A DNA stretch of 18,637 nt from Fonticula alba ATCC 38817 (GCA_000388065.2 KB932209.1), one strand, 5' to 3'. Counted from the first letter of the stretch, positions 1-18,625 are shown. Notes: generated from the sequence alone by a model not told the origin. Made by a program: numbers and translations.

Positions 1-126
1 CCCCCCCGCCCGTCGACTGCCTCTCAGGCAGGAAGGGAGAGGGAAGAACAAACACCAGCCGGACGGGAGATCACCCTCCGCCGGTGGCAAAAGTGATCAC
101 CCCCTATGCTTCGGCCTGTCCGCCCT

Positions 127-2602
127 TCACATCTGACGATTGAAACCACGGTAGGTCCCGGGGCCAGCCGACCCGGGCCCGAGCCCGGCGCCGGGAAAAC
201 GGCCCATGGGCGCCATGCCGGGACCGGGGGTCGGCGACGGGCCACCGGCCTCCGGCTGGCGGGCAGCGCCCATCGGCCCGTGCATGGCCCAAGACCCCTC
301 GCGCTGAGCCCGGCGCTCGGTGCTTAGAATGCCGCGCAGCTGGGCCTCCGGATTACCCGCGCCGGAGCTGTCCCTGGCGGAGAAGGCCACCGGCAGGTGT
401 CCGGAAGCTGGCCAACGGCGGATGACCTCACCACACCACATCTTCATGAGGCCGGCATGTGCGCGGCGCCAGTTGCCGGCCTCGGCCACCGGGTGGCCGC
501 GGTGCGTCGGGTCCGGCGATGCCATGTTCGGCTGCGTCGACAAGCTGTGCAGCAGTGGCGAGTGGACGCTCAGGGTGCCGCGCTTGGACTGCGTGCGATA
601 TGCGGGGTTTCCCATGAAGGAGGCACACCGGGCGATGGGAGGGGAGAAGAAAGCCGGGGGGGTTAGAGAAGTGGAAGAAAAGGAAACTCGCTGACAACCC
701 ATGCGGCAAACACGTACCCGGTAAACGGCCAGCACCGCGTCAAGCAACAAACGCTCGGCCGTGTAAATGGGGGTCGACGCGCGGTCCGGGCGCGGGACCG
801 CTGCCGGGATTTCGCCCAGCACCATGGGGAAGGCATGTGGGTTACCCTCGGCCTCGACACCGGTCGACAGGCGGAAGGCCGCTGCCTCCGGGCCCTCCGG
901 ATCGAATGCCGCCTCGGAGGCATACCGCACCACCACATTCGGCATCGACAAAGACATCGGCCCGACGGTTGGGTGGCCTGGAAACCCAATGTCAGACACA
1001 TGCGCAGGCAGCCACAGCCAGGCAAGAGAGACGGGAGGCAGGGAAGGGGGAAGAAAAAAAAAGAGCCCCAAACCAAGGCAAGCGCACGGAAAGCCCCCCC
1101 CATAGAAAGAACGCACCGATCAACTGCGCACTGCCCACCACATACGGCAGCATGACATAATCATCCAGGCCCCACGCGCCACGCGAGCCCGCCGGCTCCA
1201 GCCCATACCGGCGGATGATCAGTCGCACGGTGCGACTGTAGGCCGGCAGAACGCCGAGAGCCAGGGCGCGCCAATCGCGCAGGCCGCCAGCCACCGGCCC
1301 CGGCAGGGCGGGCGGCTGGCCGGCCATCTCCAGCCATGCCTCTGGCACTTGGAAGCCAAAGTCCAGGAAGGCCAGATCGTAGACGCTAATCTGAGCATTG
1401 CCCGGCAGGGGCATGGAGATGTCACCGACGCGCGGGCCCACTGCCTCGAGCACCGCCTCGGCCACCTGGGGCCCGGTGGAACCGGCAGCCTGCGCGGTAG
1501 CCGCCACACTGGCCGATGCGGACTCCGAGGCCGAGGTTGACGGCCGAGCTGGCTGGCCAACCAGACGCAGACGCGCCAGTCCGGCCACCAACAGCAGGAA
1601 GGCCGTCTCGTGGCCGGTGCCGAAGTCCAGCCGCACCGGGTTCCCGAGGCACGCCTTAAACAGGGCACACAGCTGCTCGGTGGCCGCGGCAATATGTGAC
1701 GAGTCGGCGGTCGAATAGACCGCAGCCAGCAGCGGGGTAAAGACATCCGAGAAGGTCTGGCCGGCAGGAGGTGATGGATGGACAAAGACAGGAGGAAAAG
1801 GAGGAGGCATGGGTCAGGAACATGGAGCAGCAAGACAAGCCACGGCCACGGCCACGGCCACGGCCAGGGTCACTTGCACGGAGACTCCCGGCTTTGGGCC
1901 AGAGGGAGGAAGGAGACAACGAACCTGTGATGCCTTCGAGTGGAAGGTCCGGAAGGCCACATCGCCGAAGCGCCGACCGGCGCCAGTCGGCTCCTTCACT
2001 GGGGCCACCTCGTCCAGCAGGGCCGGGAGCTGGACCTGGAAGAGGTCCCGAAGGGCAAGAATCGCGGGGCTAACCCCGGTCCCGGTGGCCAGGGCGGATT
2101 CCAGCGACTTGGCAGCCGTCTCGGTCCAGGCCCCGGCCGCGGCAGCCGACAGGGCCGCACAGCACTCAATGCAAGTGGCGAAGGCCGCCGAGCTGACCCA
2201 TCGGCTCAAACCGCTGTCATAGTGACGGTGGTGGATGGCGCCGGCCTCGCTGGCGCGAGGATGAGCCACGGGCCCGGCGGCGCCAGCCGATCCGAGAGCC
2301 TCGGTTGCCGGCGCGCCAGCCGCCGGCATCCGCCCGACGTCCGCCAGACGCGTCGGGTCTGCCGGATTGTGCGACGCAGGATGCGACAGGGAGCTCGGGA
2401 GCGGGACCTCGCGCAGGGTGGCGCCATCCTCGAGAACAATGTTCTGAGGCACTGGCAGGTAGTTCAGGTCAAGGATCTTCATAGTGGAGGGAGCAGAAGG
2501 GAGGTCTTAGCATGCCAGGACGAGGAGGAGGCGGAGGCGAGAGAGCAAGAGAGAGGGAGTGAGAGAGAGAGAGAGGGAGGGAGGGAGAGAGAGAGAGGGA
2601 GG

Positions 2603-4549: not shown

Positions 4550-4657
4550 NNNNNNNNNNNNNNNNNNNNNNNNNNNNNNNNNNNNNNNNNNNNNNNNNNN
4601 NNNNNNNNNNNNNNNNNNNNNNNNNNNNNNNNNNNNNNNNNNNNNNNNNNNNNNNNN
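4550..4657. other. Assembly gap (108 N) in the divergent intergenic region
   Basis: Run of N. Confidence 1.
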
Positions 4658-14059: not shown

Positions 14060-17000
14060 TTACTTGAAGATCTTGCCCTCGTTGAACTTCTTGTTGGTGA
14101 TGGAGGCGAAGCTGCAGCCCTCAATGGAGTCGTCCCAGGTGAGGAAGGCGTTGACGAGGGCCTTGGTCTCGTCGTTGATCTCAAGCTTCTTGAGGACGTA
14201 CGACTCGAAATCCGGGGCATCAGACAGCTCGAAGGGGATCTCCTGACCACGGACGAGGTAGATGGCGAAGAGCTCGGAGTCGTTGTCCTCGCCGAAGATG
14301 ACGAAGGAGCCGAAGGCATACTTGCGAGCGCGCTCAGAGCGCTGGAACAGACCGTTGATCAGGTTGCAGGTCATGAAGGTCTGCTTGAGGAGGTGGTTGT
14401 CCATGTAGCTGGCGAGCCACAGGGAGTAGCCCTCAAGGTCGACGTTGTCCCAGAAGTACTTGATGGAGTCGACCTCGGAGTTGTTGGAGTAGAAGCGCTT
14501 CCAGTTGTCCAGGACGAAGGACGAGGGGGGGAGCAGATCCAGGGGGTTCTTCTCCTTGCCGTCGGCGGCGGNNNNNNNNNNNNNNNNNNNNNNNNNNNNN
14601 NNNNNNNNNNNNNNNNNNNNNNNNNNNNNNNNNNNNNNNNNNNNNNNNNNNNNNNNNNNNNNNNNNNNNNNNNNNNNNNNNNNNNNNNNNNNNNNNNNNN
14701 NNNNNNNNNNNNNNNNNNNNNNNNNNNNNNNNNNNNNNNNNNNNNNNNNNNNNNNNNNNNNNNNNNNNNNNNNNNNNNNNNNNNNNNNNNNNNNNNNNNN
14801 NNNNNNNNNNNNNNNNNNNNNNNNNNNNNNNNNNNNNNNNNNNNNNNNNNNNNNNNNNNNNNNNNNNNNNNNNNNNNNNNNNNNNNNNNNNNNNNNNNNN
14901 NNNNNNNNNNNNNNNNNNNNNNNNNNNNNNNNNNNNNNNNNNNNNNNNNNNNNNNNNNNNNNNNNNNNNNNNNNNNNNNNNNNNNNNNNNNNNNNNNNNN
15001 NNNNNNNNNNNNNNNNNNNNNNNNNNNNNNNNNNNNNNNNNNNNNNNNNNNNNNNNNNNNNNNNNNNNNNNNNNNNNNNNNNNNNNNNNNNNNNNNNNNN
15101 NNNNNNNNNNNNNNNNNNNNNNNNNNNNNNNNNNNNNNNNNNNNNNNNNNNNNNNNNNNNNNNNNNNNNNNNNNNNNNNNNNNNNNNNNNNNNNNNNNNN
15201 NNNNNNNNNNNNNNNNNNNNNNNNNNNNNNNNNNNNNNNNNNNNNNNNNNNNNNNNNNNNNNNNNNNNNNNNNNNNNNNNNNNNNNNNNNNNNNNNNNNN
15301 NNNNNNNNNNNNNNNNNNNNNNNNNNNNGGACAACCACCTCCTCAAGCAGACCTTCATGACCTGCAACCTGGGGGGCGGCGTCTCCACCGTCACTCCCCC
15401 CCCCCCCCCCCCCCCCCCCCCCCGTCACCGTGCCCCGGGTCGCCGGCTGGCTTCTTGCGAGGAGGCTACCGACCCTGGACTGGACAGGGGGAGTGTGTCG
15501 TACACGCGCGCACACACACACACACACACACCATCGACCGCTGACGGGTTGCATTCTGCCTTGTGCATGCTTGCCGTGTTCGCCACTTGCCAGCAAGGCC
15601 CCTGGGGGGGGGGGGAGAGAAAGGTGGGCTGACTGGGAGGGGCGGGCTCGCAGGCACCCCACCGACGTGCACGCCCGAACATTCCCCCTCGCGCGCCAGG
15701 GCCGAACTGGGGTGGGCGCCACAAACATCGAAGGGCCGATACTGGGCCTAGGCGCACAAAGGCCCCTTGGTCCGGGGTCCGAGCGCGGACCCATGAATCA
15801 GCCTGGTTGCATAGGCGCGAGATGGCCTGAAGCGATATTTCGAGAAAAAACGCGCACGCGCCGGGGGAGGGAGAATAATGCGCCATAGAAAGGTGCTCCC
15901 CGCCGGGCCCGATGCCCCTGAGAACAACGAAGCGAACAAGTTTCAACTGGTGCCCCCCCCCCTCCCGTGGGGCGAGCAGGGGGGGGGGGAGGGGGGAAGA
16001 CACGGCCCCAGCACGTCGCCTAAGACAGATTGATGCCTGGGCCCTTGACGCCTCGGTCTGCGGCGGGGACAGATGGCAGACAAGTCGCGAGAGGCGGCAA
16101 TAAGAGAAAGGAATAGAGGGGCCGCCTCTGGGGGGCCGGGGCCGGGGCCGGGGTCGGCCCGGGGGGGGGGGGCACCAGGAAAAAAGAGAGGCATATGCGC
16201 GAGGTTACGCGAGACGGAAAAGCGAAAAGCAGCCGGCCCCGGGACAAGCAGGCAGCCCCCTGGAACCCCCATTGCCAGGGAGGCCGGGAAGAAAGAGGGG
16301 CCCAAGGAGCACCCCCAAAAGCGCTGACACACACACACACACACACAACACCCACACACAGCACAGATGCATGCACCTGGCGAGGGCTAGCACCCCCATC
16401 CTTCCTGGGCAATGTGCACAGCCGGGCCAGCCAACGATGGGCCGGTTCCCTTCGTCGGCCCTGGGGGGATACACGAAAAAATACTCAGCGGCGGGATATT
16501 CCAAGCCGGCCGCCTGAGGAGGGTCTCGTGGGCACCTGAGGGCTCCTGTCCGTGATGACCATGAGCGGTGTGGTGTGGAAATGTCGTTTTGAATTCTGCA
16601 AATATGTTGAATTCCATTCAAAAAGATCGGACACGCGGGACTCGCCGATCGGGGAGGGTCATCCGCGTCCCTCAGGTTCGTCGGTGGGGCAAAGGGACAC
16701 GCGGGGCGCAGGATGCCCGCCCGGCTGGCAGCGCGCCACCTGTGCCCTCTGCCCTGTGGTTGCTGGGGCGGGGGGCCAGGGTATGCCCGACAAAAAACCC
16801 ACACCAGGCAGTGGTGCCGGGGCTACTCTGCGCAGGGGAGAGGCAGGGGCATCCCGGCCCTCGGCTGGCCGCTGGTCGGCCAAGAGGGTTCCCCTTGGGT
16901 GGTGGGCCAGGAGGCGAAGGGCCTGAAGCAAGTCGGGTTATCTCTTTCTATTTCGGATATTTATATTTTTCCATATATACCCTTGTCTTTCAGGCGAGCG

Positions 17001-18516
17001 GGTCCCTCGATGGGGGCCGGACAAGCCTTGTGCAGCAGACACACATGCTGGCCCGTTGCTTGGGGTCCCCGCCTCCCCCTGCCAGTGTGTCACTCCTGGC
17101 GCGCGTGCATGTGGGGCTTGGCGCGGGTGGGCGGGGGTGAATGCGCGGAGCCGGAGCCCGGGATACGCGAGGGGCCCGCAGCCTGTCGAACCCCTGGGCG
17201 CACGAGGTGCGGGCACCCCCGCACGCGTGTGTGCGTGCGCCGGTCTGCCAGCCGGGGATGTGTAGGTGGGCCTGGCCGTGCGCGCCCCCTCGCCAGGCTG
17301 GCTTGATTGGGTGGGTGCCACACACACACACACACAGACACCCGGGCCCCGGAAAGCGTGGTCATTTCCCCATGTACCTGTTGGTGCGGCTCTTTTCTGC
17401 CCACCGACCTCCGGCGGCAGGTTTTCTGCCCGCGGTCGGACGTCCACCCGCATGTCCGGGACCGTAGGCTGTGGCTGTGTTGCACCCGCCGCACCTGCGA
17501 CCGAGAAGTGACGGGGGGGGGGGGNNNNNNNNNNGCAACGTTGGGCTGGTTGAGGATGGTGTTGAACCAGCGGTTGAGGTTGACGAAGGGAGCGCGGGTG
17601 ATGGTGTCGAGGTACTGTGAAGGAGGGGAGGGGGCATTTCGGAGGGGGAGGATGGAAAGCGTGTCAGAGAGGGAAGAGTGTACAAAAGAGAGAGGGGGGG
17701 CGGGGAGGGAGGGGAGGAGGGAGGTGGGAAGGCGGGAGAGATGTAGGCAGGTTTCTTAAACACAAGGCCGATTGACTCAGACTTGGCCTCAAACGGCTAC
17801 CACATTGCTGTCGCAAGTCTCAGGAAAAACCGCCGCAGTGGAAAGGCTCACGATGGTTTTGCAATAAATACTTGCATATGTGTGTGTGTGTGCGAGGGGG
17901 GATGTAGAGAGACAGAGAGAGGGAGGGGGGGGTAATGGGTGGCGAGGAAGGAGAGCAGAGGCTGTGCTGCCTCCCCTGGCTCCGGGAAACGCACCATCTT
18001 GTACAGGGGCAGCAGAGTGCAGAACAGGACAATATCGGCAAGGGTGACCTGCTCGGAGGCGAGGTAGGTGCGGGTGGTGAGCCACTTCTCGAGGGCGTTG
18101 AGGGAGCGGCGCAGACCGGAGGCAGCGGCGTTGTGGGCGTCCTTGTCGTAGGCGCGGATGCCGAAGATCGGGTACAGGAGAGTGGCGAGGTGGCCGACGA
18201 TCTCGTTGTCAGCGAAGGACATGAAGGTCTGGACGAGGCCCTTCTCGTAGGCGGTGGCACCGAGCAGGCCGACGGACTCGTCCTGGGCGGCCAGGTAGAA
18301 GGCAATGGCGTTGGACTCGAAGAGGGGCTTGCCGCAGGGGGTCTTGAAGACGGGCATCTTGGCCATGGGGAAGAGCTCCTTCATCTCGTCGGTCTGCAGA
18401 TCAGCAGGGAAGTTGAAGGCAGGCTGGTCGACGGTCTTGCCGACATACTTGGCCGCGATCAGGGCCTTGAGGGCGCGGGGGTTGGCGGCGGAAGAGTACA
18501 GGGTACCGGCAGACAT
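14060..18516 (-). CDS. EEF1G: Elongation factor 1-gamma (eEF1B-gamma), gapped model
   Basis: Exon 1 is 18516-17995 (GST-like domain, FESNAIAFYLA, TRTYLASEQVTLADI; donor GTGCGT). Exon 2 runs from 17614 to the gap at 17535 (YLDTITRAPFVNLNRWFNTILNQPNV). The C-terminal domain is 14571-14060 (NPLDLLPPSSFVLDNWKRFYSN...TFMTCNLINGLFQR...FNEGKIFK*). The Lys/Ala-rich linker is not visible and presumably lies in a gap. Confidence 0.96.
14572..15329. other. Assembly gap (758 N) inside EEF1G
   Basis: Run of N. Confidence 1.
15330..15371 (+). repeat. Exact 42-nt inverted copy of EEF1G coding sequence
   Basis: GACAACCACCTCCTCAAGCAGACCTTCATGACCTGCAACCTG is the exact reverse complement of 14360-14401 and directly abuts the gap. 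Confidence 0.97.
15511..15531 (+). repeat. (CA)10 microsatellite
   Basis: Direct reading. Similar CA/TG runs lie at 13521-13535, 16327-16347, 17319-17336 and 17878-17892. Confidence 0.95.
17525..17534. other. Assembly gap (10 N) truncating EEF1G exon 2
   Basis: Run of N; the true size is unknown. Confidence 1.
17739..17877 (-). ncRNA. Intronic box H/ACA snoRNA, probably SNORA9/snR43-like
   Basis: Hairpin 1 has lower stem UGCAAGU (17876-17870)/ACUUGCG (17818-17812) and upper stem AAAACC/GGUUUU. The H box ACAGCA (ANANNA) is at 17811-17806. Hairpin 2 has lower stem GGUAG/CUGCC and upper stem UGAGGCC/GGCCUUG. The ACA box is at 17744-17742. Pocket 1 (UUGC and UCCUGAG, starting 14 nt before the H box) is complementary to LSU rRNA CUCAGGA-U-A-GCA. 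The RNA lies sense-oriented in EEF1G intron 1. Confidence 0.85.
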
Positions 18517-18625
18517 GGTGGCAGAGGAGGAGGCGATTGGGACGATAATACGACAAACACGACTAACACACTTCTCGGAGGCCGAGCGCGCGGGCGGCGC
18601 TGGAGCCGGAGCGGCGCCTTTTATC
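18517..18625 (-). promoter_or_regulatory. EEF1G 5' region: TATA-like GATAAAAG and GCCACC Kozak context
   Basis: On the minus strand GATAAAAG lies at 18625-18618 and GCCACC at 18522-18517, directly before the ATG. The TATA role is unproven. Confidence 0.4.

Follow-up and report, generated by a model that had tools for sequence, protein, structure and literature searches.

The first coding intron of an elongation factor 1-gamma (EF-1-gamma) gene of Fonticula alba ATCC 38817 (GCA_000388065.2, KB932209.1) probably contains a genuine H/ACA small nucleolar RNA (snoRNA) gene homologous to SNORA9, whose product is predicted to act, most likely, as a single-site guide for pseudouridylation (psi) of the large-subunit (LSU) ribosomal RNA (rRNA) through the first of its two pockets. 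The element, hereafter copy A, was identified in an 18,637-nucleotide (nt) stretch of DNA, which we refer to as the window. We consider it to go beyond a chance resemblance because it matches the SNORA9 model over its full length, because the same match recurs in a paralogous EF-1-gamma gene nearby, and because the guide and box elements have been kept between these two copies. The parts of copy A, numbered such that snoRNA nt n corresponds to window position 17878 − n, are as follows.

17877→17739, minus strand: H/ACA snoRNA of the SNORA9 type (copy A), 139 nt; assigned from the full-length RF00411 match, the fold, and a paralog with kept guide elements
17813..17875 (nt 3–65), minus strand: 5′ hairpin with pseudouridylation pocket 1; from the minimum free energy (MFE) and consensus folds
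nt 3–8 / 60–65, minus strand: lower stem 1
17861..17869 (nt 9–17), minus strand: pocket 1 5′ strand, AUUUAUUGC; read from the sequence, 0/9 positions changed relative to the paralog
nt 18–28 / 42–52, minus strand: upper stem 1
17819..17825 (nt 53–59), minus strand: pocket 1 3′ strand, UCCUGAG; read from the sequence, 0/7 positions changed relative to the paralog
17806..17811 (nt 67–72), minus strand: H box ACAGCA, fitting ANANNA; in the alignment it lies opposite AGAacA, the SNORA9 model's H box
17746..17801 (nt 77–132), minus strand: 3′ hairpin with pocket 2; from the model alignment and the MFE and consensus folds
nt 77–81 / 128–132, minus strand: lower stem 2
17789..17796 (nt 82–89), minus strand: pocket 2 5′ strand, CCGUUUGA; its GUUUGAGGC is that of the SNORA9 consensus and of the paralog
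nt 90–101 / 107–119, minus strand: upper stem 2
17751..17758 (nt 120–127), minus strand: pocket 2 3′ strand, UAAGAAAC; differs from AUAGGAAAU in the paralog and AUAGAAA in the SNORA9 consensus
17742..17744 (nt 134–136), minus strand: ACA box, then 3 nt (UCU) up to the predicted end of the RNA; the model's ACA aligns here

Family assignment and architecture

When the whole window was searched on both strands, SNORA9 (RF00411) was the sole Rfam family to match on E-value reporting. The match spans model positions 1–133 of 133 at 17877–17739, with a score of 35.1 bits and an E-value of 5.3e-4 for the whole window, or 1.4e-5 when the search was limited to 501 nt. In the model alignment, the H box AGAacA falls on ACAGCA and the ACA on ACA, while UUCCU of pocket 1 falls on UUCCU and GUUUGAGGC of pocket 2 on nine identical bases. 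Given the significant E-values, homology to SNORA9 is likely, though curated membership of RF00411 is not reached. An earlier note on this DNA had suggested a relation to SNORA9 as well as to snR43 of yeast, both to be checked with Infernal; the former is upheld by the full-length match, whereas the snR43 model returned no match at E-values up to 10.

The MFE fold of copy A consists of two hairpins, with which the centroid folds of both copies and the consensus fold agree, and in both copies we noted the hairpin-hinge-hairpin-tail arrangement with one large internal loop per hairpin that defines the H/ACA architecture. The distance from the top of the pocket to the following box is 14 nt in both halves of the RNA (nt 53 to 67 for the H box and nt 120 to 134 for the ACA box), within the 14–16 nt of the H/ACA distance rule. 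The earlier note was thus right about the element itself, i.e., a hairpin-H box-hairpin-ACA unit of ~139 nt whose pocket 1 obeys the distance to the H box and whose two hairpins should appear on folding; the unit lies at 17877→17739 on the minus strand, although the note had left the strand unstated and had overlooked both the divergence of pocket 2 and the paralogous copy described below.

We also observed that each hairpin has a UGAG tetranucleotide at its apical end (17776–17779, nt 99–102, and 17847–17850, nt 28–31). Both resemble the CAB box of Cajal-body H/ACA RNAs, a resemblance that could easily have arisen by chance; the one in the 3′ hairpin is found in the paralog too.

A sister copy in a neighbouring EF-1-gamma gene

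The region examined around the gene extended 10 kb to either side (locus L121, in which a window coordinate equals 28517 minus the L121 position). The window ends at a gap of 2206 N, beyond which lies a second, complete EF-1-gamma gene, arranged head-to-head with copy A and carrying its own snoRNA.

L121 5744–7293 (~2.6–4.1 kb past the window end), minus strand of L121: paralogous EF-1-gamma gene, 416 amino acids (a.a.), with GST_N, GST_C, and EF1G domains
L121 6710→6573: sister snoRNA, 138 nt, in the intron of the paralog at the same codon

The single significant Rfam match of the sister snoRNA was again SNORA9 (33.4 bits, E-value 3.7e-5), and the RNA folds like copy A. The flanks of the two introns are unalignable, while the snoRNAs within them can be aligned with just two gaps, of 2 nt and 1 nt. 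Differences occupy 30 of the 140 alignment columns (about 21% divergence) and are unevenly placed. None of the 28 columns in lower stem 1 and the two pocket 1 strands has changed, whereas changes affect 6 of 13 columns in apical loop 1, 6 of 11 in the hinge, and 3 of 7 in the tail; yet the H boxes within that hinge (ACAGCA in copy A, ACAUUA in the paralog) both fit ANANNA, and the ACA of the tail is kept. Were the differences to fall uniformly, the chance of 0/28 would be about 0.8^30 = 0.001. Five changes lie in stems, all of them one-sided and all retaining a standard pair. A functional guide RNA would be expected to leave such a pattern of differences, which we regard as the strongest evidence in our analysis. 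The diverged pair may also be viewed as a small natural experiment on the constraint acting on H/ACA RNAs, in which guide strands, boxes, and stems have been held, and the loops, the hinge, and one guide arm that would now be redundant have been free to change.

The host genes themselves have diverged unevenly. Exon 1 of copy A shares 85% identity with that of the paralog at the DNA level, 82% at the protein level, and 73% at fourfold-degenerate sites, while the two genes show no difference beyond a point 15 nt upstream of the 3′ splice site and their C-terminal domains share 96% identity, a pattern suggesting either gene conversion of the 3′ part or a partial collapse in the assembly.

Pocket 1 and its predicted LSU target

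In pocket 1, the 3′ strand UCCUGAG (nt 53–59) pairs with CUCAGGA, a U-A is left unpaired, and the 5′ strand, ...UAUUGC (nt 12–17), pairs with GC followed by R-R-U-R. At this site the Rfam eukaryotic LSU consensus reads UCCCUCAGGAuAGC and then enters a variable stretch; since it carries both CUCAGGA and GC, 7+2 base pairs (bp) fall on consensus positions, and the remaining pairs depend on Fonticula's own LSU. Read on this consensus, the predicted pocket 1 target in the Fonticula LSU includes CUCAGGAUAGC, and the target CUCAGGA-psi-A-GC proposed earlier for this pocket is matched by the consensus. On metagenomic LSU loci, pocket 1 forms up to 7+7 bp, and the U of the target was the best bipartite site in all 120 of 120 loci, a count that is biased given that these loci were fetched with the pocket 1 motif.

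By our own count on the yeast sequence, the U of GGAUAGC is presumably the position of psi966 in yeast 25S rRNA. The site predicted for pocket 1 would therefore correspond to the yeast psi966 (snR43) site and to one of the two SNORA9 sites. As the earlier note had stated, snR43 is the guide assigned to psi966 of yeast 25S rRNA (PMC5699541), while U1683 and U1782 of 28S rRNA are given as the two targets of SNORA9 (PMC12288042).

Pocket 2 is kept in the paralog and diverged in copy A

The second SNORA9 site is where the two Fonticula copies part. The consensus pockets of SNORA9, as read from the model alignment, are complementary to AGGA-U-A-GCUGG and CUAU-U-C-UCAAAC. In the paralog, pocket 2 reads ...GUGUU AUAGGAAAU, as in the SNORA9 consensus, with GUUUGA on the other strand pairing with UCAAAC, and it forms 5+7 bp with ACCUAU-UC-UCAAACU, the second SNORA9 site. 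This site ranked first in its locus for 55 of the 59 LSU loci with at least 3 bp on both arms, and since the loci were unselected on the pocket 2 motif, the test is unbiased in this case. The Rfam eukaryotic LSU consensus contains CCuaUUgUCAAAC as well, and the corresponding yeast position, 25S psi1042, is assigned to snR33 (PMC5699541).

Copy A, by comparison, reads ...GUGUU UAAGAAAC, with three changes relative to the paralog (one base lost and two changed). Of the two SNORA9 sites, the first is the predicted target of pocket 1 of copy A; at the second, the 5+7 bp of the paralog's pocket 2 stood against 0+6 bp for that of copy A, with the CCUAU arm contributing 0 bp in 102 of 102 loci. In these 102 LSU loci, pocket 2 of copy A formed no canonical duplex at the ancestral site, and registers shifted by one need the rRNA variant CUUAUU, which is present in few loci only. 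Because the paralog's pocket is intact, the Fonticula LSU is implied to carry the usual CCUAU, such that copy A would have lost its function there; loss of pocket 2 function at the psi1042-equivalent site is thus the most likely reading of copy A.

The four bases preceding the yeast-1042-equivalent U vary among the metagenomic eukaryotic LSU loci (CCUAU, UCCAU, UCUAU, CUUAU, CCAAU, and others), so that any guide RNA directed to this position must change along with the rRNA in each lineage.

The host gene and its transcription

The host intron and the surrounding parts of copy A of the EF-1-gamma gene are arranged as follows.

17995..18516, minus strand: exon 1 of EF-1-gamma copy A, 174 codons, with GST_N and GST_C (Pfam)
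17615..17994, minus strand: host intron, 380 nt, GT..AG; C/T-rich low-complexity sequence lies on either side of the snoRNA
17535..17614, minus strand: start of exon 2 (80 nt), cut by a 10-N assembly gap at 17525–17534
14060..14571, minus strand: C-terminal EF1G-domain part of copy A, a called gene with PF00647, 96% identical to the paralog

The snoRNA sits mid-intron, with 117 nt separating it from the 5′ splice site and 123 nt from its 3′ counterpart. The intron follows codon 174 of the open reading frame (ORF) starting at 18516, and the frame continues with YLDTITRAPFVNLNRWFNTILNQPNV beyond it. The best solved relative of exon 1 was the GST-like domain of human elongation factor 1-gamma (PDB 5dqs, E-value 1.3e-32), and the exon 1 product is 100% identical to the hypothetical protein H696_05112 of Fonticula alba (KB932209.1, GCA_000388065.2). 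With this GST-like N-terminal domain in exon 1 and the EF1G domain (PF00647) both downstream and in the paralog, the gene can be named as EF-1-gamma, and the placement of an H/ACA snoRNA in its first coding intron, as earlier proposed, holds.

In the assembly, copy A runs in the order exon 1, intron, 80 nt of exon 2, the 10-N gap, 2.2 kb of sequence, a 757-N gap (14572–15328), and the EF1G domain. The 2.2 kb between the gaps (15329–17524) contains six ORFs, none with a Pfam match, and has no recognisable coding content. Public annotation splits copy A into H696_05112 (254 a.a., across the 10-N gap) and a 166-a.a. EF1G-domain protein. The split by 2.2 kb may be due to a misplaced contig or other assembly artefact, or may be a real insertion. 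The called genes at the locus are all protein-coding and the snoRNA is absent from them; our analysis therefore adds a snoRNA annotation to a locus with protein-coding calls only.

Assemblies of RNA runs of Fonticula alba contain 0.51–0.56 of the sampled words of 17560–18520. Among 31-mers of this segment, the wholly exonic fraction amounts to 0.56, while no more than 0.07 also occur in the paralog. As the word share found in the contigs equals the exonic share, with little sharing with the paralog, the copy A host is transcribed and spliced, the intron having been removed.

Elsewhere in the window, a further assembly gap of 108 N lies at 4550–4657, and the low G+C seen at 14–16 kb in the composition profile is the N run, with no true shift in composition.

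Weighing the alternatives

Several points weigh against copy A being a SNORA9-type guide as described above. The Rfam gathering cut-off of 85 bits is reached neither by copy A (35.1 bits) nor by its paralog (33.4 bits), and a search of the window at the gathering score returned no family at all. Fold energies are no better than those of shuffled sequences in either copy A (z −0.82) or the sister snoRNA (z −1.20); the energy being ordinary for the composition, the fold alone is weak evidence. No double compensatory change was seen between the two sequences compared. Pairing with the 3′ half of the pocket 1 target (GCARUA) is a prediction that depends on the LSU sequence of Fonticula itself, and human U1683 and U1782, which we take to be the equivalents of yeast 966 and 1042, were equated with them from our own counting and the complementarity of the consensus pockets, with no source behind it. 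The host of copy A is interrupted by two N gaps enclosing 2.2 kb of unrelated DNA and is possibly a damaged duplicate. Lastly, words of the 139-nt element were found in none of the three listed RNA runs, each of them tiny (~12 million letters), and since the runs are so small, this absence says little.

The state of the host gene leads directly to one alternative, namely that copy A is a decaying duplicate, either a snoRNA pseudogene or a redundant copy in the course of being lost, in a damaged EF-1-gamma paralog, with the neighbour serving both rRNA sites. The pocket 2 arm is indeed gone from copy A, its host is split by gaps and unrelated DNA and annotated as two proteins, and a complete 416-a.a. 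paralog with an intact double guide is located 2.7 kb away. We nonetheless regard such decay as unlikely, considering that pocket 1, the boxes, and the stems of copy A are intact, with 0/28 core changes despite about 21% divergence, and that the frame of exon 1 is open, with 82% protein identity to the paralog. In the RNA assemblies, moreover, the words recovered from the copy A host amount to just its exonic share, and the breaks in the gene coincide with N gaps and may be assembly artefacts.

A second alternative concerns the fate of pocket 2, which might have been retargeted after the duplication to the 5′ end of 18S rRNA, at GCUUG-U-C-UCAAAG (GCUUGUCUCAAAG being expected there), a site that by our own count is presumably human 18S psi34 (U34). 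Copy A pairs there with 4+5 bp compared to 0+5 for the paralog, and this was the sole hit of that strength common to all 28 loci with a small-subunit 5′ end. Against this, nine base pairs including one G·U are marginal for an H/ACA guide, the 5-bp arm that supplies five of the nine is inherited from the similarity of UCAAAC to UCAAAG, and an rDNA unit contains about 0.6 further hits that are equally strong. The pairing was read on these loci and would be a prediction for the 18S of Fonticula. While psi34 is a known human 18S pseudouridine (PMC10227372), yeast has no listed pseudouridine in that region of 18S (table in PMC5699541). It is therefore doubtful that, following an inverted duplication of EF-1-gamma, the neighbour kept the double LSU guide and the 3′ pocket of copy A moved to 18S by way of the three changes in one of its strands; were this true, it would be a gain of a new guide site caught in the act, by way of similar rRNA segments.

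That the low-complexity intron merely gave rise by chance to an H/ACA-like fold, and yields no RNA product, would suit the ordinary fold energy, the sub-gathering Rfam score, and the absence of the 139 nt from three tiny listed RNA runs, yet it is very improbable in view of a full-length covariance-model match (E-value 5e-4) at exactly these bounds and of a second copy found where the paralog's intron corresponds in position, in which guide strands and boxes are kept while the flanks are unalignable.

Under the reading we favor, in which copy A is an intron-encoded SNORA9 homolog, general H/ACA biology suggests that debranching and exonucleolytic trimming of the spliced EF-1-gamma intron would set the RNA free, while the Cbf5/dyskerin-Nop10-Nhp2-Gar1 proteins would protect it. 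Its 5′ pocket would then bind CUCAGGA and GC(+), presenting the U of GGAUAGC at the top of the pocket for isomerisation to pseudouridine. The ancestral SNORA9 layout would have been that of a double guide, with the 3′ pocket directed to CCUAU-U-C-UCAAAC, the yeast psi1042 (snR33) site. The neighbouring paralog appears to keep this 3′ pocket, whereas three changes in the 3′ strand would have removed that arm in copy A, whose 3′ hairpin may be kept mainly as the structural half needed by every eukaryotic H/ACA particle.

Relation to known guide RNAs and evolution

Compared with vertebrate SNORA9, copy A is collinear over all 133 model positions, with the H and ACA boxes in register. The two share the 3′ strand of the 5′ pocket (UUCCU, for ...AGGA-U-A-GC...) and the 5′ strand of the 3′ pocket (GUUUGAGGC), and differ in the apical parts, which are unrelated, and in the 5′ strand of pocket 1 (CCAGC in SNORA9, UAUUGC in copy A), a difference that follows the variable stretch of rRNA downstream of GGAUAGC. 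For the 3′ strand of pocket 2, SNORA9 has AUAG and copy A has UAAG, while the Fonticula paralog keeps AUAGG. The hosts also differ, in that human SNORA9 is located in the non-coding SNHG15 (PMC6480895), whereas copy A resides in an intron of a protein-coding EF-1-gamma gene.

The closest functional counterparts in Saccharomyces cerevisiae are two separate RNAs. The target of snR33, CCUAU-U-C-UCAAAC, is also that of the 3′ pocket in SNORA9 and the Fonticula paralog, from both of which snR33 differs in being a separate snoRNA, while copy A is without a pairing arm for this site. snR43, which is independently transcribed in yeast, unlike the intronic copy A, acts on the same LSU uridine as that predicted for pocket 1 of copy A (25S psi966 in GGAUAGC). 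It is, however, also listed for 5.8S psi73, and without psi1042, in the yeast table (PMC5699541). We found no paper in the literature treating SNORA9 together with snR43, nor one cataloguing Fonticula snoRNAs.

Genes of the translation apparatus are common hosts of snoRNAs, and snR38, a box C/D methylation guide, is unrelated to the RNA of copy A. The intron of TEF4, an EF-1-gamma gene of S. cerevisiae, encodes snR38 (PMC2705663), as correctly stated in the earlier note, and in this respect TEF4 is like the host of copy A. The note had gone on to argue that the host role is ancient and the cargo different, pointing to the movement of snoRNAs between introns. This step finds no support in our analysis, given that TEF4 with snR38 and Fonticula EF-1-gamma with a SNORA9-like RNA are two data points only, from which an ancient host role and independent recruitment of highly expressed translation genes are inseparable; the data give no ground for taking the host relation as inherited in preference to convergent, and an ancient host with a swapped cargo is a conjecture. 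A search of the literature for snoRNAs in EF-1-gamma introns outside yeast gave nothing relevant.

Fonticula is a holomycotan amoeba, and the SNORA9 double-guide arrangement appears to be present there as well as in vertebrates, a set of results that would be unsurprising to a specialist. As the double-guide layout (966 and 1042 sites) is common to the Fonticula paralog and vertebrates, it is probably old, and judging from this shared layout the SNORA9 double guide probably predates the split of the fungal and animal lineages. Budding yeast divides the two jobs between snR43 and snR33.

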